A stretch of DNA of 48,757 bases. Source: Salisapilia sapeloensis CBS 127946. Its lineage: Eukaryota; Protista; Oomycota. A program made the position numbers and the translations under genes. Positions 934-13,224 of this stretch are shown piece by piece. Location: positions 1 through 48,757 of the forward strand of contig JAADVB010000140.1 in NCBI GenBank assembly GCA_023334545.1, given 5' to 3'. Every line of letters starts with the position of its first letter. Positions within the stretch are counted from its first letter, which is position 1. Under the pieces are notes generated by a model. That model was not told where the DNA came from, did no database searches, and saw only the letters and a list, made by a program, of their open reading frames with translations.

Positions 934-2874
934 ATGAAGGTATCTATCGTCCAGACCAGGCACTATATACCCAGTACTCATATATCCCATGGCGGTGCAT
1001 TACTCAGGCACGAACGGAGACCACACCGCTCTCGATCGAGACCGTGAGCAAGCGGATGCTAGCTCCTGATGAGGAGTGGCAGCAGCGTCGCGACGCCATG
1101 CGAGACTTGAAAGGCATGGTAGGCTCTCAAGAAAACAAATATTCCCCACTCAACTCGTCGGACGTCACTGCCGACAGCCTCTTGGTGCTAGCATCTCCCT
1201 TCTCTCATACGGTACGCGTCCTTCGCCACTACTTTACAAAGAGCCTTGAACCAACGACTTTATCATAGATTAAAGACCTTCGCTCTGCTGTCGTGAAGGA
1301 AGCTTGTGACTCGTTCGCTACCATTGTAGAGTCCCTAGGCGGCTCCAAATGTCGTCTCCTACTGCGCGATGTTTTCCCGACGCTCATGACCGCCAGAGGC
1401 ACCTCTAACAAAGTAAATATCGCTATCAAGCTTACTCAGGTACATGTCTTAATAGTTTTAATAGGTTAACACGAATGCCGTGCATGCTTGCATCCAACGT
1501 ATCGTCCAGTCCTCGAATGGGAAATACGTGATGGAGCCTATTCTGGAGACGCTGGCGTCCAGTAAGAACCGAGAAGTGCGAGAAAGCTGCATTCAGTACA
1601 TTGGCCTTGCCTTCTCCCACTGGTCCAAGTCCAGCCTCGAGCCTTTCCAGATGCCTTTGCAGAAATCAATCCTCAAGTCTCTTCGAGATGCCTCGCAGCA
1701 GAGTCGCGAAGTTGCTCGCCAGTGTTACTGGAAGTACGTCGCCATGTGGCCGGAAGATGAAAAGATCGACAACAACCTCACGCCTGGCGTCAAAAAGCAC
1801 CTGAAGCGAACTGCCAGCGACAACTCCATTCGGAGCGAGACCGAGTCTGCCAAGCGCCGTCGTCTCGCTACCATCACCAACTCCCAGCGCACGAACAGGA
1901 GTGCAGCCAAGTCCCTCGGCTTTGAGCAAGACGAGAAGCCTTACAACCGGCCGACTAGAGTGCGCGTTGACGAGAGTTCCCAGCGACCGCATACGACTGT
2001 GGGTTCTTCCCGGACACAAAAGCCGACGTCCATGATGTCACCTGGCATGAAGAGCAGCTACAAGGGGCCGCTGAGAGTGCTCGTGAAGCCTCCCATTGGT
2101 GCGCATCAGAGCGTATCGAAACCTTCTGCACCCGTAAAGCCTGTGCCTACCTCCAAACCAGTCACGCGTCCTCGACCGATGACGTCAAACGCTTCCAAGC
2201 CGACAGTAACCTCCCAGAAGGCTGCAGTTCCGTCCAAGTCGACAATTTCTTCGAAGCCAACGGCTCCGTCGTCGTCACAGGCGAAAAAGACAAAGGTGAG
2301 CTACATGAAGCTGGAAGAAAAGTATATCAAGGCGAGAAAAGTGCTGGAGGAGACCAAGGCTGAAGTCAAAGTGCTCCGGATGCAGCTGGAGCAGGAGCGA
2401 ATGCAGAAAGAGGAGTGGCGGTCGGCGCAGTGCCTCGATCAGTCACCATGCACGTCGCATCCAATCTCTAACGACGTTGAGGACAAGCAATCTACTGCTG
2501 AACGAAGTGAAGTGGATGCTGCTTCATCATTAACCGAGCAGTGGGCAAAAGAATTAAAAGAGCTTCCTGAATCGGCAACAGAGCCAGCGTCGAATGATGC
2601 GGAAGAAAGAGTCCGAGTCGCACAAGATGCAGCGATGGATGTTGATATGGAGGGCAAAGAAGAGCAGCATTCGCCGATGGAGGAGCCAGCAGAGGAAGAA
2701 GTGATCCCTACAGCTGAACCAGAAGTGGAACCAGCGCATGAAGTTTCTTTAGAAGATGCGAAAGACGAGTGTGAAAAGGAGCATGATGAACTTAGTGAGC
2801 AGGCCGACTCGAACTTTACCGACATCAAGGAAGGGGACGCAGACCATTCGGTAGTAGAAACGAAAGGCAAGTAG
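934..2874 (+). CDS. CLASP N-terminal (TOG/HEAT) domain protein; join(934..939,1008..1211,1269..1412,1465..2874)
   Basis: Three GT-AG introns (940-1007, 1212-1268, 1413-1464) join the frames into MKARTETTPLSIETVSKRMLAPDEEWQQRRDAMRDL...IKDLRSAVVKEAC...VHACIQRIV...KNREVRESCIQYI...LRDASQQSREVARQCYW. The 'W..R..A' and 'DLRSxVVKEAC' motifs are CLASP-TOG hallmarks. These are followed by an S/P/K-rich linker, a coiled coil and an acidic tail. Confidence 0.8.
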
Positions 2875-3076
2875 CTTTTTAGCCAAAGATGACCGCGATG
2901 GGTCTCGCCTATAATACTTTGTCGTGTCTTTGCCGTTTGTTTCGTGTCAGCTGCGGACATTGTTTCATCAAGTTGCACAATACCTTTCTTTCTCTGATAA
3001 ATCTCGAGCGTTTCTGTCTATTCTAGCAATCGTGTCCGCTTTCCTACCATCGACTCCATGTAGCAGCATGCAACCT

Positions 3077-4072
3077 TCACTGTCCAGTCGCAGAGACGAC
3101 CAGTAGTCTTGGTCGATGGACGTCGGGACAATAGTCTTGACGCTGCTTCATATACGCAAAATGCTCCCTCTCCAGCTTTGAGTCAAAGGATGCGTCCTGA
3201 CGAACTTGTAGTCCAGCTGCCTTTGCAAAAGCGCAAAAGCGTTCCATGGACCCGTTTCTCGACGGTTGCATCAGATACGCTTTGCCCGTGCCTGGCTTCA
3301 AAAGAGCTTTGATCGTACAAGCCAAGTCTTCGTGGAAGTCCTCGAAAAACAAACAGTCGCTGGCGAGGATCATGTCAAAACAATGTCTGTAGTCGTTTGG
3401 CATGTGCTCTGCCTCCTCTCGACTCCACCTCAGTACCTCTGTCGAAATCTTCGTCTTGGATGAAAAACGCTTCGTGTTCGCTTGGGCACATAGTCTTAAA
3501 TTCTGGACGCATTGGGCATTGCCATCCGTCACGAGCATTCGTCCGAAAGCTGTAGGAGCTTTGAGAAGCAGTCCGAATGCAGCTAGGCCAGCCATGCCAC
3601 TGCCGAGCTCGCACACGTCAAGACTTGCTTTGCCTGTTGCATCTACTATAGACTCGCAAATCTTTTCCTCGAGCAAGTAGCTTAGCAGCAGGGACTCTGC
3701 TGGCCATGTGCGAATGTTCCCGGTGTTGTCAACGCCGGCGTTTTCGTGGTGGCTGAGTAGTTCAGATACGGATACTCGACCGGCTTGGTCTGGCCGCTTT
3801 TCACGAACATATAGCACATTCTCTTGATCTTTTTGAGTCATCGTAGAAGCCGATAGGTCGTAGCTGACCCAGCAGAATGGAAATGGGACGTCAGGTAGCT
3901 CTGCTGGCAACTCTTCCAGTCTTGTCGGCACATATCGAGGGAAAAATTGGGTGGCAATCGACGAAGCCGTCTCTCCGCTTTTTGTTCGCGACCTTTTCGT
4001 CAAGGCAGCTCGGAGGACGCCCCAATGGCGTGCAGATTGAGGGTGGTTTGGCTGCGAGGTTGTCGAGGCCAT
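3077..4072 (-). CDS. CAMKMT: Calmodulin-lysine N-methyltransferase (class I SAM-dependent, METTL21/CaM-KMT family)
   Basis: Motifs HWGVLRAAL, GVDNTGNIRTWPAESLL, VCELGSGMAGLA, LVTDGN, LRW and FDMILASDCLFF match the CaM-KMT family. Confidence 0.85.
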   Translation of the reverse strand: MASTTSQPNHPQSARHWGVLRAALTKRSRTKSGETASSIATQFFPRYVPTRLEELPAELPDVPFPFCWVSYDLSASTMTQKDQENVLYVREKRPDQAGRVSVSELLSHHENAGVDNTGNIRTWPAESLLLSYLLEEKICESIVDATGKASLDVCELGSGMAGLAAFGLLLKAPTAFGRMLVTDGNAQCVQNLRLCAQANTKRFSSKTKISTEVLRWSREEAEHMPNDYRHCFDMILASDCLFFEDFHEDLACTIKALLKPGTGKAYLMQPSRNGSMERFCAFAKAAGLQVRQDASFDSKLEREHFAYMKQRQDYCPDVHRPRLLVVSATGQ

Positions 4073-4545
4073 CGCGTGTTCCGATGTTTGTGCGTTTTAT
4101 GCTGCTTCGAGCTGAAGAGTCCACTAGATTAGAAGGTTCAAGTTCAGTTGCAAACGAATAAATCTCCAACGGTCGTCACAATAGACGGGCAAACTTCAAG
4201 TTCTCGACACGAGCCAAACGAGACGTCCAAGGCGGAAGATGCGACTCGGATCCTCTACCAGTACAGAAAGATGTATGGTCGTGAAATTGACGCTTCGACT
4301 AGTGTCCAAGCAGTCGTACATACCCGAACAGAGCTGGAGGTCACGATCGTGTGCTCCAGCAGCTACAAAAGTTTATGGATTGCTCTGGTCAGTGATCCAC
4401 TCCTCATGCTACCGACAAGGGATTTCTGCATCGAATGCAGGGGCTAATGTACTGGTGACCAAGTCCAAGCCTCGTATATCAAGACCGTATGCGATGCGTG
4501 GTGACGGCGACACATCCGAGTGATTAAAATGTGCTTCTTTAGCTC

Positions 4546-5187
4546 GTGGAAATCCAATCACAATGGGATGTACCAGCAATTGTCGTGGCAACTTCCGCAT
4601 GTAGTACCAATTTGAAGTGGCCATTATGTGCCCACTCATGCGTACTAGACAAAGCTTGGAATGTAGCCATTGGAAATGCTATCGCATTGGCATCAAGCAA
4701 CAAAAACATAATAACATGGCGTTGGACCCAGTCTTCGGACGAAAATGGTGAAAATCTAGCCGGCCCTGATATTGTGATGACGAGAGCAATGATTATACAG
4801 TCATGAACGGATATTTAGGAATTGTGCAGCATTTTCACGACTATGGAGAAGAGAGCTGCTCGACCGATGCCATGTAAGGCGTTTCCTTTCCTATTTACAT
4901 GGAAGTCTCTAAATTTCTTTACCTGGGCTGGAGCGAGGGGTGCTCTCGACGAACCAAAAACAAATGGCTCGCGGTGGATTTCCCCAAGTTGTCAAGTGGC
5001 TTACTCGCCATCTTGACCAAGGATGTAAGACGGACGCAAAGGACAACGCTGAATCTAGCAGGCAACAGAAAATTTGCAATGGCTTCATAAACATCAGACG
5101 GAGGACTTGTCCAAGCATACCATGCTTTGCGCCACATACAATAGACATCTAGAAATCGTGAAATTGCTTCTGGTCATGAACAGTTGA
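4546..5187 (+). pseudogene. Degraded oomycete-type ankyrin-like repeat gene
   Basis: Repeat fragments resembling the consensus NGHLEVVKWLHENRxEGC(S/T)xxAMD occur in three frames: NGYLGIVQHFHDYGEESCSTDAM* (4803-4877, premature TAA), MEVSKFLYLGWSEGCS (4899-), GGFPQVVKWLTRHLDQGCKTDAKDNA (frame of ORF 4940) and QWLHKHQTEDLSKHTMLCATYNRHLEIVKLLL (5077-5187). This implies at least one stop and two frameshifts. Confidence 0.7.
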
Positions 5188-5463
5188 TGCGAATAGAATT
5201 ATATGCGTATGCTCTTGATTCTCTCAGTCGTGCACTATCGCCTGAATATATGCAGGCGCCGAGATGCATTTCTGTCAGAATCTTATGCAGTCGATAATAT
5301 GATGAACCTTCCGCTTTTGCACAGAACACAAGCAGTATCAAGTAGAAACCACTGGCGAAATACGAAGAAGACACATATTTCCCCGCGACCATGCCAATGT
5401 TATATACTCTAACTCTTTCATGAAGACAAATTGCTTCAGCGATAAAAACTCAATTTCAATGCA

Positions 5464-8400
5464 TTATAGGTTCCATGGAAACCAAGATCCACCCCTTGGA
5501 CGACCCTTTCTCCTGACTATGTTTCCTTCTTCATCGTACTGACTGCCATCAAGTTGAGACTGTATGTTTTCGCTGACACGACGTTCGCGCATGGTCTCTT
5601 CCCGGGAGCGTTGCAGCTCTGCACTGAGCTCTTCCAGTTTCTCTTCGTAACTCAAGATCTTTTGCTGTGCATGCCGCACACGATTCTGCATGCCAAGCAC
5701 ATTGCCCTCCAACCGACGAATTTCCATTTCCTTCTCCTCAATCTCCTCGTCCCTCCTCTCCAAAATCACTTTCAGCTTGCTAGCGTCCGACAGCTTGGCG
5801 CTATCAAAGATCTCATGCTGCACAAGGCTCCCTCGCCTTTGGAAGCGTATACGAAACTCATCGTCAGGAACAGGTTCAGCCTGCTCTCCTTCCTCCACTC
5901 TAGCTTCGTATTCGTTCCCGTGTGTGACTCCCTCTACTAAGTCATCTACGCTTGGCTGTTTGCTCGCCAAGACTGCCATTTGCTCATTCTGAGGATCCAC
6001 TTGGGGCGGATCGTACGCATTTGCAGCTTGCTCAATACTCTTCGCGCTTGACGAGAAGGACTCGACGAGGAAACCGACGACAATGGGCAGCAGAATGGTG
6101 CTAATCGAGAGTCGATACGTGAAAAAGAACACGTACGTTGCGTTCGATCCGGTCATGGCATGTGCCGCGTTCATGACGATATCCCATCCAGCGAGCACAG
6201 CCACAGAAAAAAGCGTCACGAGTGTCGAGTCAAAGGAATCGAGTTGGAATTCTGCACGTACGTCGTACCAATTCGGAGACATATATCGGTATTCGGGTGG
6301 ATAATGCTGCAACAAGGAGCCATAGTTGGCCTGACCTACGATCGCAAAGGCGTAGATGACACTGAAGACGACAATAAGCAGCTGTGCCATGAGAGGCATG
6401 ATCCGCTGCATCGTCCACAGAATCTCATGGAAAGGTGGGAACAGATTCAGCAGCTTTATAATGCGCAACGATCGGACTGCGAGGGCCAGGTTGTAGAACG
6501 TCGTCGAGATTTCTGGCGGGTCGTCCGTGCTAGTGATGGCATAGAAGACCCACCCGACGGATACAATCGCTAGATCTAGCTTGCAGAAGGGTCGACCGAA
6601 GAACTCGGACCTGCCGAACGCAATGAGCTTCAGCACGACTTCCGTAGTGAAAATTGAAAGGAGACAGACGCCGACGATTCGCCACGACCGGTTCTGCGCA
6701 AATGCTAGTTCGATGTTATTCACTTGCACAGCCTGAACGACCGACAGGCAAATGAGTGCGCCAACGAACAACTCTGCAAGTACCACCCGATGGTTCCCAC
6801 ACAAACGCACTTCATACAAGAGAGTATCCCTCAGTTTCACACGCGATCGTTCAATCGACTGGCGAGTCGGCATTGAAAAGCAAAAGCTAAAGGGAGTCAA
6901 ACGATCCCGATGCGTTCGCTCTACTTTTACGCTCAGCAAAGAGCAAAGCTGGAAAAAGTCTGCTAGGTCGACACTCCCAACATGCTCTAGATCCACGGTA
7001 TTGAACACCAGCTCGGCGTCCGTGCTGCTCCACATTGGCTGCAAGTGGACGCAGACTGCGATCCAAGATTCTAGAGACAGCCTCTTTTTCTGCATCGGCA
7101 CTGGCGCATCATGACTCTGCGTCTGTGGATCAAAGGACACGGTGCGTCCATAGAAACGAGAGGATCCACGTCGAAGCGTGCGACTGCTTCTGCCACTGCT
7201 GTTCCGTACAAAAGCCTCTTGTTGCGGGTTGTCTGACAGAATGTCAAAAGCTGCGAAGAGCGCTGCCTTCCGTTTCTGCAGCCGCTTGTACAGCATGTGC
7301 TCCGTGTGCTGTTTGTAAGACTTGTAGGACACAGCAATGGTCAGTTTGGCGAGAAACAGGTTGGTGAGCATGATGAAAACGATAAAGTAAAGCGCACTCC
7401 AGTGCGAGTTGACAAAGTACGGATACATGGTTTGGACGAGACGCGGCGGACAAGTGTGCACGAGCAGCATCGTGTACATGGAGGAACCAACGGAAGCAAA
7501 GTGGGGCGACACTTGTCCGTCAATTCCGACGTCGCTCGAAAACAGCATGTACCCCACTAGGCCGAAGAACATGATGAGACTTAGTAGCAACAAGAGGACT
7601 ATGAGCACCTTTCGAAGAGCTCGAATACAACTTCCGAATATCACTCGGACGTTCCTTCGTCGAGCGATGAAGAAGAATGGACGAAGAGCTCTAGTGTACC
7701 TATACGGGTTCCATGTCGGTATCGCCAAGTTCAGTGCTAGGTCAATGACCGTTGCAAGTAGCATCTGCGCTTTCACAAAGGCCCACGGTTCTCTTGATCG
7801 GTACTTGCTCCTGGTCTCCTTGGAGCTCATGAGCCATCGGATAGCCAGGTCGGAGGCAAACAACAACAAGCAGCCAATTTCGACTCCTAGTGTGGCATCC
7901 AACTTGCCCATGGGTGGACGCTCCACGAATGCGAGGGAGCTCGCCACCAAGACTGCGAGTGCGTAGATCATGTGGTAGGAGTCGGAATGAAAGAACTGAT
8001 TCAAGAACAAGGCTTGACGGTCTAGTCGATAGCCAATCTTCCGCCCATGGACGCCATCTCGGATAAACGATGCCGCAATAATATACTGGTCATGCTCCAA
8101 ATCGCTGTCATCCACTGCGTTCTGGACCACTGGATTAGCAAACTCCTGTCCACCTATGCGAAAGCTCGGTGCGTGTATCAGCTTCGGTCGACGTCGACCC
8201 TGGCTGTCGACACTCGAGCTCTCACTCGCTGGCTTCCCTTGCTGACTGTTGCTTTGGTGCCTGAGTTTCTGTTCCTGGTAAGCTTTCTGTACTTCAGTCG
8301 CCATGTCCTTGGCAGTGCTATTGTCTTCGATCTCTGTCAGCTTTTTCCACTTGCGTCGTGTGTTCAAGATATCTGGATCCACTTGGACATTGCCACTTGG

Positions 8401-8592
8401 AGAACTGGCGGGTGGACTGGAGTTGGCATGGCCAAAGTGTGAGAAAGTGGAGGACATGGGCGAGTCCGAGGATTCGTCCGAGTCCACGCCCTGCGTCACC
8501 GCTCGTCGGATCAGTGGCGTGATCTCATCGGGCATGCGTCCGCCACTATTCGAGCGTACATGGCGAGACGAATTAGCTCTTGGATCGCTCAT
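5464..8592 (-). CDS. TPC: Two-pore channel (TPC family), 2 x 6TM with EF-hand-like linker and C-terminal coiled coil
   Basis: 1042-aa intronless ORF with two S1-S6 repeats: S4 RYTRALRPFFFIARR and AVRSLRIIKLL; S6 YFIVFIMLTNLFLAKLTIAVSY and ILLPIVVGFLVESF. EF-hand-like FNTVDLEHVGSVDLADF lies in the linker. Confidence 0.9.
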   Translation of the reverse strand: MSDPRANSSRHVRSNSGGRMPDEITPLIRRAVTQGVDSDESSDSPMSSTFSHFGHANSSPPASSPSGNVQVDPDILNTRRKWKKLTEIEDNSTAKDMATEVQKAYQEQKLRHQSNSQQGKPASESSSVDSQGRRRPKLIHAPSFRIGGQEFANPVVQNAVDDSDLEHDQYIIAASFIRDGVHGRKIGYRLDRQALFLNQFFHSDSYHMIYALAVLVASSLAFVERPPMGKLDATLGVEIGCLLLFASDLAIRWLMSSKETRSKYRSREPWAFVKAQMLLATVIDLALNLAIPTWNPYRYTRALRPFFFIARRRNVRVIFGSCIRALRKVLIVLLLLLSLIMFFGLVGYMLFSSDVGIDGQVSPHFASVGSSMYTMLLVHTCPPRLVQTMYPYFVNSHWSALYFIVFIMLTNLFLAKLTIAVSYKSYKQHTEHMLYKRLQKRKAALFAAFDILSDNPQQEAFVRNSSGRSSRTLRRGSSRFYGRTVSFDPQTQSHDAPVPMQKKRLSLESWIAVCVHLQPMWSSTDAELVFNTVDLEHVGSVDLADFFQLCSLLSVKVERTHRDRLTPFSFCFSMPTRQSIERSRVKLRDTLLYEVRLCGNHRVVLAELFVGALICLSVVQAVQVNNIELAFAQNRSWRIVGVCLLSIFTTEVVLKLIAFGRSEFFGRPFCKLDLAIVSVGWVFYAITSTDDPPEISTTFYNLALAVRSLRIIKLLNLFPPFHEILWTMQRIMPLMAQLLIVVFSVIYAFAIVGQANYGSLLQHYPPEYRYMSPNWYDVRAEFQLDSFDSTLVTLFSVAVLAGWDIVMNAAHAMTGSNATYVFFFTYRLSISTILLPIVVGFLVESFSSSAKSIEQAANAYDPPQVDPQNEQMAVLASKQPSVDDLVEGVTHGNEYEARVEEGEQAEPVPDDEFRIRFQRRGSLVQHEIFDSAKLSDASKLKVILERRDEEIEEKEMEIRRLEGNVLGMQNRVRHAQQKILSYEEKLEELSAELQRSREETMRERRVSENIQSQLDGSQYDEEGNIVRRKGRPRGGSWFPWNL

Positions 8593-8845
8593 CTACTCGC
8601 TGACGAATGTCGGATCGGATTGTCGATGTAGACGCAGGCGCGAGAGAGAGTAAGATCGCCCTACTTTACCACGAACTGTCAGAGGAATCAGACATCATTT
8701 TGCAAATCAGCACATCCGAACCACCTGGTGCTTGAAGTGCTGTCGAAGGCACCTGAGCGGTACAGTGAGCCACAGTCGGATCGGAGTTCGTTCGGACGAC
8801 TGCCGACCGCTTCCAGCACCGAAAGCGACTGCGATTCTTATTCCG

Positions 8846-10720
8846 ATGGAGTTTCTCGTGCACAATACCTCGCACTCTGACCTTGTGGTGGAGCTTTCTT
8901 GGATCGATGCACCAGCGTCTACTGCGAGCTCAGATGCCGCCGCGGACTCGACTGCGACACCTAGCGTGACGGCCAAAGACGGAACGAATGTGCCATTGAC
9001 TTTCCTTGCTCGTCCTAAATTCAGTCTCTTTCAGCCGATTAGTCACTCAATCTTGAGGCAAGTCCAAAACCTTCGCTCGAATGAAGAAAAACAAAATGAC
9101 AATTCTTCGAGAAGCGCATTTACATCCGTCTCGAATGGAAATACTTCCATGAGCGTGTCTGCTCTCAAACCTAGCTTTATGGATACGACAGAAGAGTCTT
9201 CTGACACTATAGACTCAAGTCTACCAGACTGGGTAGCTTTCTGTAGCAGCACAAAAGCTCCTGTCGGTTTCCACCTCCGAAACTGCCCTATTCCAGTGAC
9301 CGATCTCCAGTCTTTTCGTGTCAGGGGTACAAGCGACTAGAACAACATCTTGTAATATCCACTAACAACCAATTACACCCTCTTAGGTGACATCGAGTCC
9401 GTGGAGCTTATCCAAAAGTACTGGGGCCGAGTTGCCATCACAGCCGTCTACTTTCCGCTCGTCGCCGTCATCATTCCGAAATGGGAACAAGTTCTCTCTC
9501 AGTTCCATTCTCGCTCTAGCAAGCAGCTCTTGTACATGATCAGTGGTGCCGGCATCCCGAGGAACTCTAGTCATTCCATGCAAGGCAATTCGACGGAAAT
9601 CACAGCGCAATTGATCACACTCTTCCTTCATCAGTGCTACCCAAGTATCGAAGTCAATCAAGTCCACTCGGGATCCAACATCTTTAGGTACGATGACAAT
9701 GTCCAGTTCATGACACGAGAGCTGCGTCCTCGGCTAGAAGCCCAGAGAGAGATCTTGGTGGAGCGGTCAGGTGAGTCTTGGAAGTCCCACTTTCACGTGA
9801 CAATTGCGTATGCGGACGGTCCGCCCGCCCGTCTAAGTGCCTTGAACGCCTCTCTGCGTATCTACCAGCCTTCCTACCTTCACGCATGGCAGTTGAAAAC
9901 ATTCTGGCATCGAAAGCAGCTTTCGATGGATGACGTCGACTTTCACTCGTTCCAAAACATTGAGGCTGCACCTAGTATATCTGTGGACGACGCAGACGAC
10001 ATGACAAAGAAACTCGTGCTGGAGATGCAAGGATTTCGAGACCAGTTTCTCAACGCAGAGCACGAAGGAGAGGTGCTGGACTTTTGGCTTCGGAAAAGCA
10101 AGAAGCCTGTGCTAGCCGTTCTGTTGATCGAGAAGCCTGGCAAGGACGGTCAAGAGTCTCAGATCGTTGTCAGTCGAGGCATGAACTGCGAAGTGTCCAT
10201 GCCAACGGGGTCTCTCTGTGCCGAGAGAAATGCCATTGGAAGTGCGCTGGCAAAGGATCCGACGCTCACTCGGCGCTCGCTCAAGATGATTGGCGTACTG
10301 GGACTCAACCTGTCGAACAGCAAAAGTAGTACGCCGAATGGAGGGAAAGAAGAAGCAAAGCAAGAAGTGGAAGAGCCTCTGGTGCCAATCACTGTGTCCG
10401 AAGCAGAAGCAGAAGCAGTGGACGATGACGAAAGTCCTGGCAGTGAAGTGGAACCTGGAAAAAGGAGGAAGAGGAGACTGATCAACATGTCTAACTCGTC
10501 GCCGCTGCGGAAACCGAAGCGACCACGAACGTTCTCCTGCGATGAAATAAGCATTGCCGGATTGCAGGATCATGCAGATGTGCACGACCGAAATCCCTTG
10601 GCTCCGTGTGGAGCATGCAAGGAGTGGCTGCTCAAGATAGCTGAAGCAAACCCTTCGTTCCGAATTGTTACGTTCGAAAGCGTCCGATGTGATAACTTTT
10701 ACATTCATCAGCTCATGTGA
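8846..10720 (+). CDS. Uncharacterised protein with a C-terminal cytidine deaminase (CDA-type Zn) domain; join(8846..9326,9387..10720)
   Basis: A phase-1 intron at 9327-9386 (gtacaag...actaac...ctcttag) joins ORFs 8732 and 9401 in frame. Deaminase motifs GMNCEVSMPTGSLCAERNAIG (CAE at ~10217) and PLAPCGACKEWL (~10604). Confidence 0.85.
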
Positions 10721-10809
10721 GGCAATAGGCTCTCTAGGGAAAATAGTACGCTCCTTCGAATCGCATCATATAGATACATGTTGATTGTTTAGCAACCTAC
10801 GCGACGCAT

Positions 10810-13224
10810 CTACAAACTAGCGAAAGTAGACGGAGAGATACATGCTGCCACTTTACTCTCGAGCGATGATAGCTCATCAGCTTGTGGCACCGCAATCTAC
10901 GCAAACAATAAATAATTATCGCTCGACGATACATGAAAAGTAGATAAGACGTGAGACGTACATCAGAAGGCACATCGTATATGAGCGTGTGCCCATTGGC
11001 ATCACCAACGATCAGGCTCTTGCCATCCGAAGTCCAGCGCACCTTGTCGATGGATTGATCGGTCACCTGCAGCTGCGCCACTGCCATCTCTGTGTCTCTC
11101 CCAACGTGCCACAAGCTCAGCACTCCTGCTCCATCCGCGACAACAAACAACGAGGCGTGGACGGGAGACCATCGGACATCACACACATATTCCGCGGACG
11201 GCTCGAAGGACACAACCGGCTCGTCCGGATGCTCTGTGCTCCAAAGCTTCACAGTCGAGTCCAAAGAAGCTGTCAGCAGTAGACCGTCGCGATGCGGAGG
11301 TACTAGCGGATGGAAATGCGCTGCTGTCACTGGACCGAAATGCGCATTGTGGGTGGCAAAAGGAGATAGGAGCACTTCCTTCGCGTCCATGTTGTTGCTT
11401 TTGGCCGATCCACTCTTGCTCTTCTGTCGATCTAAACTAGTCAAGTACAACTTACCAGCCTCTGTACCTACGTATAACTCTGGTTGCTCTCTTCGATAGA
11501 CAGAAAAGGTGGTGGACGACGCCTCTATCTTTTTGTCTGGTGCGTGTGTCGAATTCGAAGATGGGGCAGTGGTAAATGGGGAGGCTATCCGCAAGTCAAA
11601 GAGCTCCAGTGGCTGTTGTAGCTGGTTCAAATCCCATACACCAACGCGTCCATCGGTGCTCGCCGTCACCAGCCTGAATACGACACAACATTAAAAGACT
11701 TTACACACATACAATAGCAGCTATTCATACTGATGCGAAGTTTTGTTGCCGACGAACGCCATGGCGTAGATCGGATGCGTGTGGCATCCCATCGTTAAAG
11801 ACGTCTTCTGCACAGGCGCCGACTTGGCTCGCGTGTCCCACACGACAAGCTGCCCAGCGTATGTTCCACCGACGACCAGGTGACGCTCGTACGGATGGAA
11901 GCATGCGCTCATAACTTGAGATTGACAGGTGAACCGATACTCTGGTCTTGTCGGCACCATGGTTGACCACAGCAATACCAGACCTTCGGTCACAGCAGCC
12001 AGATCCGTCAGCGCCTGTGCCGAAGCCAGTGCGGTGTCCCAAGGATCTTTGTGCTCTCTCTTCAACGGCGATGAAGACGGACTAAGCATTCCGTCTTGTT
12101 CATCCGCAAGGAAGTTTTGAGCCGTATAGGAAGCTAGGATGAGCTCTGGGAAAAATGGAGAGACATCTGTGTCGGTCACAGCACGATAACGATTCCATGT
12201 GTTGTCGTACAAGTCCACTTTTTTCGTCAGTGTCTGCGTCTGATCTGCGGACACTTCCTCTGTCGGTCCATTTGCGCTGTAGTCAATGGTGACGTCAAAC
12301 TGCTCTGCACTTGCGAGAGCTCTCTCCAATATCCTTGACGTCCGGTCGAGAAAGGATCCAAATGCGTCCGATTCGAATATCGCTTTCTGCTCTTCCTCCG
12401 TCGGAGGTGGCGCCAGTGGCGGCAGCTGACTTCCAGACATGAAATCCCCAGGTATCGACTGATCTGTGTGAGATCGGTGACGAGGAGATGACGCGTCTCG
12501 ACTAGCATTGCGAGAGTGTCGGATAAGAGTTGGCGAGCGAGGAGACGCTGGCAACTCAAGGTCGAAATTGGCTGTCGCAGTTCCTTCCTACATTTTCATG
12601 TTTGTCGGCTTTAGCCAGAAAAATACAAATACAAAAGTACGGGGCGTACATTGTGGACAGAGATATCGTTCTCCAGTGTTATCTCCGTCTGTACATGCTT
12701 TGTGTACGTCTCCACGAGCGTCGGCTGGATGTGGATTTCAGCAACGTTGTTGATCTGCATCATGTAATTTAGGATCCAGAAGTGGTGAAGTACAACACAA
12801 GTCATCTTGTACTTACCGTCGAAAGTGTAGAGAGTTTCTCGGCTAGTGATATTGCCGCCAACACCTGCTTACTCTCACCTTCCTCCTGCCCTTCGTCAGT
12901 AGGTTTCGGTTCATTGGACTGCAGGATGTCCTCGATGAAGCTATTGAACTGTGCTTCGTCGTCCTGAGCACGGTTTCCACTTTCGCTTGCATCTTCTTGG
13001 GTTTTTTCTGTGCTCCTAATGAAGATACATGTGCTTAAGATACTGGTCACTGCACGATGACGCTCTTAAAGTCGCTCAAGGATAGTTTCGCGACGTATAT
13101 TGCACACCACCACATAGGCATAGCGTCTGACATACCTAATTGCGGCTTTCCGGCGGCGGATCTCCTCCAACTTTCGCCGCTTCGCTTCCAATTCGGCAGC
13201 ATGCTTTGCTCGAACCGAGTCCAT
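10810..13224 (-). CDS. DYNC1I: Cytoplasmic dynein intermediate chain (WD40); exons 13224-13136, 13015-12817, 12754-12650, 12587-11731, 11673-10962, 10896-10810
   Basis: N-terminal MDSVRAKHAAELEAKRRKLEEIRRRKAAIR coiled coil, ETYTKHVQT light-chain-binding motif, ESDAFGSFLDRTSRILERAL, and WD repeats (YRAVTDTDVSPFFPELILASY, GLVLLWS, FTCQSQVMSACFHP, HTHPIYAM, LVTASTDGRVGVW, HFGPVT, YVCDVRWSPVH). All five introns are GT-AG and phase-compatible. Confidence 0.9.

Follow-up and report, generated by a model that had tools for sequence, protein, structure and literature searches.

A Predicted CARF-Like Sensor Domain Joined to a Cytidine Deaminase-Fold Enzyme in the Oomycete Salisapilia sapeloensis, With Bacterial Relatives Beside Type III CRISPR Genes

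Introduction

What might a protein that joins a Rossmann-like domain to a zinc-dependent cytidine deaminase (CDA) domain be doing in an oomycete? The question is raised by a gene in a 48,757-nucleotide (nt) stretch of DNA from Salisapilia sapeloensis CBS 127946 (GenBank assembly GCA_023334545.1, contig JAADVB010000140.1), hereafter the window. A first-pass annotation had read its product as an uncharacterized, ligand-gated and possibly nuclear deaminase with a CARF-like sensor. In the type III CRISPR immunity of prokaryotes, it is mainly CARF domains that receive the cyclic-oligoadenylate (cOA) alarm signals. Drawing on predicted structures, conservation and the gene neighborhoods of bacterial relatives, we think it probable that the protein is a ligand-regulated cytosine-nucleotide deaminase, composed of a CARF-like sensor and a CDA-fold zinc deaminase and descended from a CRISPR ancillary effector.

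The LmjF36.5940-like deaminases (Pfam PF14421), to which the protein belongs as a full member, were defined as a clade by Iyer, Zhang, Rogozin and Aravind in 2011, with representatives in kinetoplastids, stramenopiles, chlorophytes, Perkinsus and Bdellovibrio (PMC3239186). Members outside the kinetoplastids were described as carrying an N-terminal Rossmann-fold domain that was left “uncharacterized,” and no link to CARF or CRISPR was given (PMC3239186). The window protein has the Rossmann plus deaminase architecture stated there for stramenopiles. “Uncharacterized” holds for the protein in the experimental sense only; both the family and its architecture are already catalogued, if functionally unexplained. 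The only other publication that we found naming the PF14421 family is a structure-clustering study without a functional result for it, and a literature search for CARF combined with cytidine deaminase, or for CARF in stramenopiles or oomycetes, returned nothing relevant (the 2020 CARF classification lay outside this search). CARF domains were reported in 2014 not to be found in eukaryotes (PMC4012209). What appears to be undescribed is the identification of the sensor as CARF, the CRISPR linkage of the bacterial members and the CARF effector that these imply in several eukaryotic lineages.

Results

The N-Terminal Domain Is Predicted to Have a CARF-Type Fold

The two exons of the gene were analyzed separately (exon 1, window 8846-9325, 160 aa; exon 2, window 9389-10717, 443 aa), and residue numbers follow exon 2 unless another model is named. 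An AlphaFold model of exon 2, based on 50 aligned homologs, is confident over residues 20-235. We compared it with 48,161 PDB representatives using VIA-align, an exhaustive method that is independent of Foldseek. The best 14 matches to the N-domain were all CARF proteins (Z 8.0-9.4), with VC1899, Card1, SSO1393, Can2, Cdn1 and Csm6 at Z 9.1-9.4 and the first non-CARF Rossmann protein at 7.4. These alignments begin at model residue 20-22 against chain residues 10-13, i.e., past strand 1 of the CARF fold, and for this reason we modeled the complete N-terminal region of a natural full-length ortholog from Pythium oligandrum (P0001, residues 1-365) as a stand-in. The ortholog is 65% identical to the window protein over exon 2 by BLASTP and 75% identical over the N-domain, and exon 1 of the window gene aligns with the N-termini of the homologs.

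The N-terminal ~360 residues of the ortholog form a single compact unit (predicted local distance difference test score, pLDDT, 85; predicted template modeling score, pTM, 0.85). For this region the best 18 VIA-align chains were all CARF (Z 9.5-13.3) and the first non-CARF chain scored 8.7. VC1899 led with Z 13.3 (root-mean-square deviation, rmsd, 2.9 Å over 132 aligned residues), followed by Card1 (12.9) and Can2 (12.7), with Cad1 at 10.2, and Csm6, Csa3 and Sso2081 were also among the matches. With strand 1 present the best Z rose from 9.4 to 13.3, and the alignments now start at model residue 1 against chain residues 1-3; the match to Thermus thermophilus Csm6 (TtCsm6) begins at chain residue 50, which is the start of its strand 1 (FAVSVHTLGTS).

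Other searches returned the same group. In Foldseek against the PDB, the exon-2 model gave weak matches (E 0.01-0.05) to CARF proteins (Csm6, Can2, Sso2081, Cad1, Cam1, and Card1), the rest being cytidine deaminases that match the C-terminal domain. The matches to the ortholog N-region were nearly all CARF, the best being the ring nucleases Sso2081 (E 3.4e-4), Sis0811 and SSO1393. A shape search of the ESM Atlas returned clusters of SSO1393 and clusters carrying Cas_Csm6_HEPN, Cas_Cas02710, CARF_Card1/HFX_2341_N, RtcR-type activators, Cas_APE2256 and Csa3_N. For a bacterial homolog (P0320), an independent ESM model in the Atlas again had Csm6, RtcR and Cas_NE0113 as structural neighbors, and its nearest named language-model clusters were all CARF families, with weak scores of 0.75-0.80.

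The predicted topology runs from strand 1 through an insert of ~175 residues to helix 1 (FPLVAVIIPKW), strands 2 (LLYMISG) and 3 (IEVNQVHSG) and then, beyond a long helix, to strand 4 (FHVTIAY) and another two strands, and this alpha/beta domain is conserved in all full-length homologs. Every motif that the first-pass annotation had picked out in the middle of the protein is there (LLYMISG at nt 9527, IEVNQVHSG at 9647, FHVTIAYADG at 9791, and PSYLH at 9869) and falls within the confidently modeled part (Table 1). Its segment of ~9520-9900 is indeed structured, but the sensor domain is larger than this, with its first strand at the extreme N-terminus in exon 1. The insert between strand 1 and helix 1 is shorter in bacteria; in the ortholog model it holds strands at residues 14-19, 47-64, and 134-163, a helix at 66-89 and a stretch (90-133) with pLDDT near 50. 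The domain is Rossmann-like and matched no housekeeping domain, and no characterized ortholog was found. Going by these models, it is very likely that the N-terminal domain has a CARF-type fold, as the first-pass annotation had proposed for a protein with a CDA-type deaminase at its C-terminus.

One competing assignment, a degenerate 2H phosphoesterase of the LigT/Acb1 type, had been suggested by weak Pfam matches to PF13563 around FHVTI in 4 of 50 homologs (E 0.003-0.007) and by the language-model neighbors of the N-terminal part of exon 2, which are 2H/Acb1 clusters at 0.90-0.91. With the language-model tool, scores of this size are no better than chance, and 141 of 256 features are shared, which is below the range of true relatives. 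The His of the H-x-T motif varies within the family (Asn, Arg, Lys, and Ser occur), a second H-x-T/S motif is absent, and neither model has a 2H protein in its top 50 structural matches. Nor is the 2H fold compatible with an alpha/beta Rossmann topology. We therefore rejected this lead, on the non-conserved His and the different fold, and regard it as exceedingly improbable. The weak 2H/Acb1 signals (window 9389-9988 and P0001 residues 252-320), which we judge to be chance, are nonetheless a curiosity in a domain that may bind nucleotides with a cyclic phosphate.

Conservation Peaks in Two Loops of the Sensor Domain

CARF domains are defined by a six-stranded Rossmann-like core in which strands 5 and 6 make a hairpin, strand 1 ends in a polar Ser or Thr, and strand 4 is followed by a basic residue that is often part of a [DN]x[ST]xxx[RK] signature; the loops after strands 1 and 4 form the ligand pocket (PMC4012209). 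In our family, the most conserved N-domain residues across eukaryotes and bacteria are a His after strand 1 and a Gly after strand 4, so that conservation peaks at the two sites that define the CARF pocket. Strand 1 with its loop reads [LV][LV][HY]N[IVL]SHxD in eukaryotes (an N-x-S-H-[ST]-D form) and LVHN[IV]GHH[DE] in bacteria, to be compared with V-H-T-L-G-T-S in TtCsm6, and its His is conserved in at least 90% of the family. In the register given by the alignment ranges, the window protein has a Ser at the end of strand 1, yet the conserved residue is the His. The strand-4 loop is A-D-G-x-P-A-R in eukaryotes (A-D-G-P-P-A-R in the window) and S-x-S-T-G-T-x-x-M in bacteria; the bacterial form resembles TSGTKAM of TtCsm6, in which the Lys is K137. 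The placement of the motifs fits CARF and the residues fit only in part, with eukaryotes having the Ser and the Arg and bacteria neither.

Bacterial Relatives Often Lie Beside Type III CRISPR Genes

The bacterial PF14421 cluster found in the Atlas search is mostly from Myxococcota. A scan of GTDB genomes yielded 16 loci and a word search ~90 bacterial-type proteins of 400-510 aa; the bacterial homologs have both domains and lack the insert that interrupts the deaminase domain in eukaryotes (see below). In 7 of the 15 bacterial contexts that were examined, CRISPR-linked genes occur within 10 kb. Together, these contexts include three type III effector modules, one of which is operonic with the deaminase gene, as well as Cas6, Cas2 and CARF genes.

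In the operonic case (P0320, loci L004/L018), a Cas10 palm-domain gene, two RAMP genes, a type III RAMP gene matching TIGR03986 (E 2e-77) and a small open reading frame (ORF) precede the deaminase gene on the same strand, while the other side holds a DUF2357/AAA/superfamily 1 (SF1) helicase cluster that is McrBC- or CoCoNuT-like. Elsewhere, a Cmr2/Cmr3/RAMP/Cmr5 (Cmr2-Cmr6) module lies 4 kb upstream (P0328), and three RAMP genes occur with a gene for a 987-aa protein (P0334). One deaminase gene has Cas6 20 nt upstream on the same strand, together with a Cas_APE2256 CARF gene (P0333), another is accompanied by Cas_APE2256 and MJ1673 (P0336), and a third by Cas2, a reverse-transcriptase/primase TOTE gene and toxin-antitoxin pairs (P0329). 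Cas10/RAMP/Cmr, Cas6, Cas2 and CARF genes are the usual company of genes for cOA-sensing CARF effectors, and a substantial share of the bacterial members has the behavior of type III CRISPR ancillary genes.

Further contexts are of other kinds. In one (P0324, L019:1-11335), the deaminase gene is the last of an operon of AAA_5, DUF2357 (McrC-like) and SF1 helicase genes, and in another (P0403, L029:8001-17290) it has Ser/Thr kinase, VWA, PP2C and helicase genes beside it; both settings have been described for CoCoNuT-type systems, which recruit CARF proteins (PMC11090510). Others hold macro-domain and radical-SAM genes (P0385), or JetD and a Schlafen/AlbA_2 gene upstream (L003), and five (L005, L006, L009, L010, and L013) have housekeeping genes.

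The operon of locus L018 (positions 939-11317; GCA_030694465.1, contig JAUXYJ010000083.1) is in itself a compact type III-like effector operon ending in the CARF-like deaminase. Its RAMP genes are fused (754 and 511 aa), and the TIGR03986 RAMP of 864 aa is weakly similar to gRAMP/Cas7-11. No CRISPR array was found in the fetched 19 kb around this operon, nor in the fetched flanks of the bacterial loci. Among the pooled neighbor ORFs of the GTDB loci, one, which is not in L004, matches CRISPR_Cas6 (E 1.8e-12; alignment A6).

The Deaminase Domain Retains an Intact Catalytic Set

The C-terminal domain matches PF14421, as do all 50 aligned homologs, and in the window protein the match covers almost the whole profile (Table 1). 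The catalytic set N-x-E / C-A-E-R / P-C-x-x-C is intact: N266, E268, C277, E279 and R280 do not vary among 50 eukaryotic sequences or among the bacterial ones, and equally invariant across both groups are R-G-x-N-x-E-V-S-[ML]-P-T-G-[ST]-L-C-A-E-R-N, N-P-[LI]-x-P-C-G-[AS]-C-x-E-W-L and F-W-[LF]-R-K, in the last of which W, R and K do not vary. This bears out the CDA-type ligands that had been read from the sequence. A Cys as first ligand, which had been pointed out as a peculiarity, is present but not unusual, because the CDD/CDA clade has C[H]AE in helix 2, with “H only in minority,” and PCxxC in helix 3 (PMC3239186).

The closest solved structures to this domain are CDA (chain 3dmo, Z 11.8, rmsd 3.0 Å over 122 aligned residues) and blasticidin-S deaminase (Z 11.0). 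The domain shares with homotetrameric CDA and blasticidin-S deaminase the fold, the three Cys zinc ligands and the N-x-E...C-A-E-R...P-C-G-x-C order, at CDA spacing up to the insert. It differs from them in that it sits in a two-domain protein of ~604 aa and has 83 inserted residues before the PCxxC helix; canonical homotetrameric CDAs are single domains of ~130-150 aa. In addition, the family has FW[LF]RK and NPL motifs of its own, and the canonical CDA profile PF00383 scores 13.8 bits, below its cut-off of 25.

As the first-pass annotation had noted, the two zinc motifs are unusually far apart: 129 residues separate CAE (residue 277) from PCGAC (406), versus ~30-35 in homotetrameric CDAs such as 3dmo. 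The cause is this insert, which is modeled as disordered and contains both basic motifs, KRRKRR (nt 10460-10477) and RKPKRPR (nt 10508-10528), that had been likened to nuclear localization signals (NLS). Its length in eukaryotic homologs is anything between next to nothing and more than 150 residues, and it is absent from bacteria, which marks it as a lineage-variable, eukaryote-specific loop that leaves the catalytic core unchanged. Within it, RKPKRPRTFS (nt 10508-10537) is kept in oomycetes and an R-x-R-x-x-S-like motif stands at the same place in distant eukaryotes (GRKRTMS, SRVRSMS, KRPRGWS and KQRSLS in distant algal versions), the remainder of the insert being unalignable (alignment A3). 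This motif could serve as a nuclear-import signal, or as a site for a basophilic kinase (AGC kinase) or 14-3-3 protein, and the oomycete protein may accordingly be nuclear. No extra Pfam domains were found in the long (~1000 aa) eukaryotic homologs.

The first of the conserved motifs speaks to the substrate. In tetrameric CDAs the N-x-E residues hold the ribose 3'-OH, and the N-to-C spacing of 11 residues in the window protein is that of Bacillus subtilis CDA, which favors a nucleoside or nucleotide over an internal base of a polynucleotide as substrate. This is relevant to the possibility of a nucleic-acid editing or mutagenic deaminase, in which the CARF-like domain would recognize RNA or RNA ends and the basic insert would direct the enzyme to the nucleus, to act there on RNA or DNA. 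RtcR-type CARF clusters are among the structural neighbors of our domain, and the CARF domain of RtcR recognizes pieces of tRNA that carry a 2',3'-cyclic phosphate. The insert is NLS-like, CARF proteins linked to CoCoNuT systems have been proposed as sensors of RNA ends (PMC11090510), and mRNA editing or DNA mutagenesis was suggested for the clade by Iyer et al. (2011; PMC3239186). However, a 3'-linked polynucleotide would clash with the N-x-E contact of free-nucleoside CDAs, Pfam recognizes no nucleic-acid-binding domain in the oomycete protein, and the closest deaminase structures are nucleoside deaminases rather than APOBEC, TadA or DddA. We consider an editing role quite unlikely.

A Single Eukaryotic Clade Under Purifying Selection

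The best BLASTP homologs of the window protein are all from oomycetes, and the family also occurs in ochrophytes, haptophytes and many marine eukaryote metagenomes. Hundreds of homologs were found, which, together with the PF14421 match (E 1.3e-62), places the observation far above chance. A maximum-likelihood tree was built from 30 sequences of eukaryotes and 84 of bacterial type. Eukaryotes fall into one clade (SH-aLRT 100), and in this unrooted tree a single branch parts them from a far more diverse bacterial set; sequences were labeled bacterial on the basis of length and architecture, and the label was verified for those members whose contigs were inspected. The simplest reading is that an early lineage of eukaryotes received the gene from bacteria in a single transfer.

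Oomycetes have one ortholog per genome, with an N-domain identity of 63-75% (Saprolegniales to the window sequence). Differences from a ~94% identical relative (run X5) fall mostly at third codon positions within the folded parts, indicating that the gene is under purifying selection.

Such a pattern would also be expected of a housekeeping or metabolic pyrimidine deaminase, whose Rossmann-like domain would be an ordinary allosteric or oligomerization module for common nucleotides (dCMP deaminase, for example, is regulated by dCTP and dTTP), with the CARF likeness reflecting ancestry only and no part in eukaryotic signaling or immunity. All oomycetes sampled have the gene in single copy and highly conserved, it is also present in the other eukaryotic groups named above, the free-nucleoside-type N-x-E is retained, and many bacterial members have housekeeping neighbors. 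On the other hand, conservation is strongest exactly in the CARF ligand loops, the sub-threshold PF00383 score shows the enzyme to be neither a canonical CDA nor a dCMP deaminase, and the genes of bacterial relatives lie within conflict loci, those of type III CRISPR among them. A housekeeping role is thus, in our estimation, unlikely.

Is the Sensor Domain a True CARF Homolog?

Several observations weigh against a CARF-derived, ligand-regulated effector. At the level of sequence, no CARF Pfam family is matched by eukaryotic or bacterial members even at E 10, PADLOC models (dCTP deaminase included) match no member, and a profile search of PDB sequences did not find CARF. HHalign of the family N-region against a 70-sequence alignment of the T. 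thermophilus Csm6 CARF domain gave a probability below 5% (P ~0.01), with the register shifted by one beta-alpha unit (several settings; one CARF family compared). The structural evidence consists of predicted models without residue-level superposition, in which strands 5 and 6 do not clearly form a tight hairpin (in the ortholog model, residues 327-331, a short helix at 335-340, then 348-351), and CARF domains do not usually have an insert such as the ~175-residue one between strand 1 and helix 1. The CARF motifs are matched in part: the D-to-R spacing in eukaryotes is 5 and not 6, and the bacterial members have no basic residue after strand 4, as is also the case in some accepted CARF families (PMC4012209). 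With regard to context, no neighbor shared across the 16 GTDB loci was found, and the neighbors scanned in five of these loci look like housekeeping genes. Single copy and strong conservation in oomycetes are as much in keeping with a core enzyme, regulatory or metabolic, as with an immune one, and we know of no eukaryotic cOA synthase.

A large profile search with the N-domain gave 642 hits, the best 150 of which all have the N-domain plus deaminase layout. As no significant profile link to CARF was found, descent from CARF is suggested by predicted structure, motif position and genomic context rather than demonstrated by sequence. In view of these three lines together, we regard the sensor domain as likely to be a true CARF homolog.

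Gene Structure and Transcription

The gene consists of two exons (Table 1) and has a predicted product of ~604 aa. The frame is continuous over the junction, where a Gly codon is split, with its first base in exon 1 and the other two in exon 2. Exactly the 60 nt of the intron are absent from transcript-like contigs of three runs from the same organism (100% identical) and one run from a ~94%-identical relative, so that contigs from four runs and two organisms join 9325/6 to 9386/7. The gene is therefore expressed, and spliced as modeled.

Contigs that cover the deaminase gene continue past the stop codon (window 10720-10900) into a convergent gene on the minus strand that is WD40/dynein-intermediate-chain-like (ORF 10797-11669), and have a loose end at 10896, which is probably an intron border of that gene. 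The 3' ends of the two genes overlap or abut within ~77 nt.

Table 1. Features of the deaminase gene and its product, in window positions.
Feature	Positions	Strand	Basis and remarks
Exon 1	8846..9326	+	ATG at 8846; 160 codons and 1 base; N-terminal strand and insert subdomain of the sensor; ORF and splice-site reading, transcript contigs
Predicted CARF strand 1 (EFLVHN, nt 8849-8866) and following loop, EFLVHNTSHSD, motif-I position	8849..8881	+	Structural alignment of ortholog model; conservation
Family-specific insert, strand 1 to helix 1	8882..9326	+	Beta hairpins, long helix, Ser/Thr/Asn-rich disordered loop (~nt 9098-9235), conserved PxGFxL and FRxR strands
Intron	9327..9386	+	60 nt, GT..AG; sequence and skipping in contigs
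Exon 2	9387..10720	+	Stop codon 10718-10720; remaining sensor domain, helical linker, deaminase domain
Predicted core of CARF-like Rossmann domain, helix 1 to strand 6 (residues 22-192)	9452..9964	+	AlphaFold pLDDT ~85-95; VIA-align to CARF chains, residues 20-192 of the model
Glycine-rich loop and helix cap after strand 2, SGAGIPRN...GNST	9542..9595	+	G53, S68, T69 invariant in eukaryotes (alignment A2)
Loop after strand 4, ADGPPAR, motif-II position	9812..9832	+	Gly invariant in eukaryotes and bacteria; eukaryotic Arg nearly invariant
Helical linker ending in family-specific FW[LF]RK	9974..10093	+	Helices at 204-223 and 227-233 in the model; from nt 10004 on, the second half lies within the PF14421 match
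CDD/CDA-like deaminase domain, Pfam PF14421 LmjF365940-deam	10004..10714	+	E 1.3e-62; 211.9 bits against cut-off 27.1; profile positions 3-217 of 218
N-x-E (10184-10192) to C-A-E-R (10217-10228), ribose-contacting and catalytic/zinc motifs	10184..10228	+	Invariance
Eukaryote-specific disordered insert within deaminase domain	10328..10576	+	pLDDT <50 over residues 314-396 (83 residues); variable length
PCGAC, second and third zinc ligands	10604..10618	+	Invariant

Discussion

In the mechanism that we propose, the sensor domain, probably as a dimer, would bind a small ligand derived from a nucleotide at the loops that follow strands 1 and 4 (N-x-S-H-x-D and A-D-G-x-P-A-R), and binding would switch the deaminase on. 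Its substrate would be a cytosine nucleoside or nucleotide whose 3'-OH is free, as N-x-E suggests, and the product the uracil form. CTP or dCTP is the most attractive substrate, a guess by analogy with Cad1, which turns ATP into ITP, and with bacterial dCTP-deaminase defense. In the Cas10-linked bacteria the ligand would most likely be a cOA made by Cas10. The single eukaryotic clade suggests that the family entered eukaryotes once; there it would have lost its CRISPR partner and gained the disordered insert with its NLS-like or basophilic-kinase site. The eukaryotic member may respond to a different ligand, and its loop residues differ from the bacterial ones. Overall, our estimate leans slightly toward gating of the deaminase by a ligand, whereas an immune role in the oomycete is doubtful.

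CARF sensors of type III CRISPR or CBASS-like signaling (Card1/Can2/VC1899, Csm6/Csx1, Csa3, the ring nucleases Sso2081/Sis0811, and Cam1) are the best structural matches of the N-domain with every aligner, sharing a six-strand Rossmann-like topology and conserved loops after strands 1 and 4. They differ from our family in showing no significant profile similarity to it and in lacking its large insert between strand 1 and helix 1. Moreover, motif I of the family is S/G-H-x-D and not G-T-S, motif II is without the Lys, and the effector is a CDA-fold deaminase. The logic is the same in Cad1 (CAAD), which is encoded with type III CRISPR and in which a CARF sensor and a nucleotide deaminase are fused; its deaminase belongs to the adenosine-deaminase superfamily, which has a different fold. 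The window effector, with its CDA fold, would act on cytosine, and the protein is thus an analog of Cad1 rather than a member of its group. Bacterial dCTP deaminases reportedly act in anti-phage defense, as is said to be described in a 2021 preprint by Tal et al. and by Hsueh et al. in 2022. The outcome may be the same, namely depletion of a cytosine nucleotide pool during infection, but the family and the partner domain are different and activation is not known to be via CARF.

These findings offer a testable function for a Pfam family that has been uncharacterized since 2011. If the sensor is a true CARF domain, the bacterial members would constitute a new class of CARF effector with a cytidine-deaminase fold, which could be tested directly in the Cas10-linked loci. 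The eukaryotic members would join the short list of prokaryotic immune-signaling modules inherited by eukaryotes (cGAS/STING, TIR, viperin, and gasdermin), raising the question of what signal switches the protein on in organisms that have no CRISPR. A more far-reaching, and rather improbable, possibility is that many microbial eukaryotes (oomycetes, brown and golden algae, haptophytes and green algae) retain a working CARF second-messenger pathway from a bacterial type III CRISPR ancillary module, in which an endogenous oligonucleotide signal, produced upon viral infection or RNA damage, would trigger deamination of CTP, dCTP or a related cytosine nucleotide and so stall replication. If so, the protein would be the first eukaryotic CARF effector and the cytosine counterpart of Cad1.

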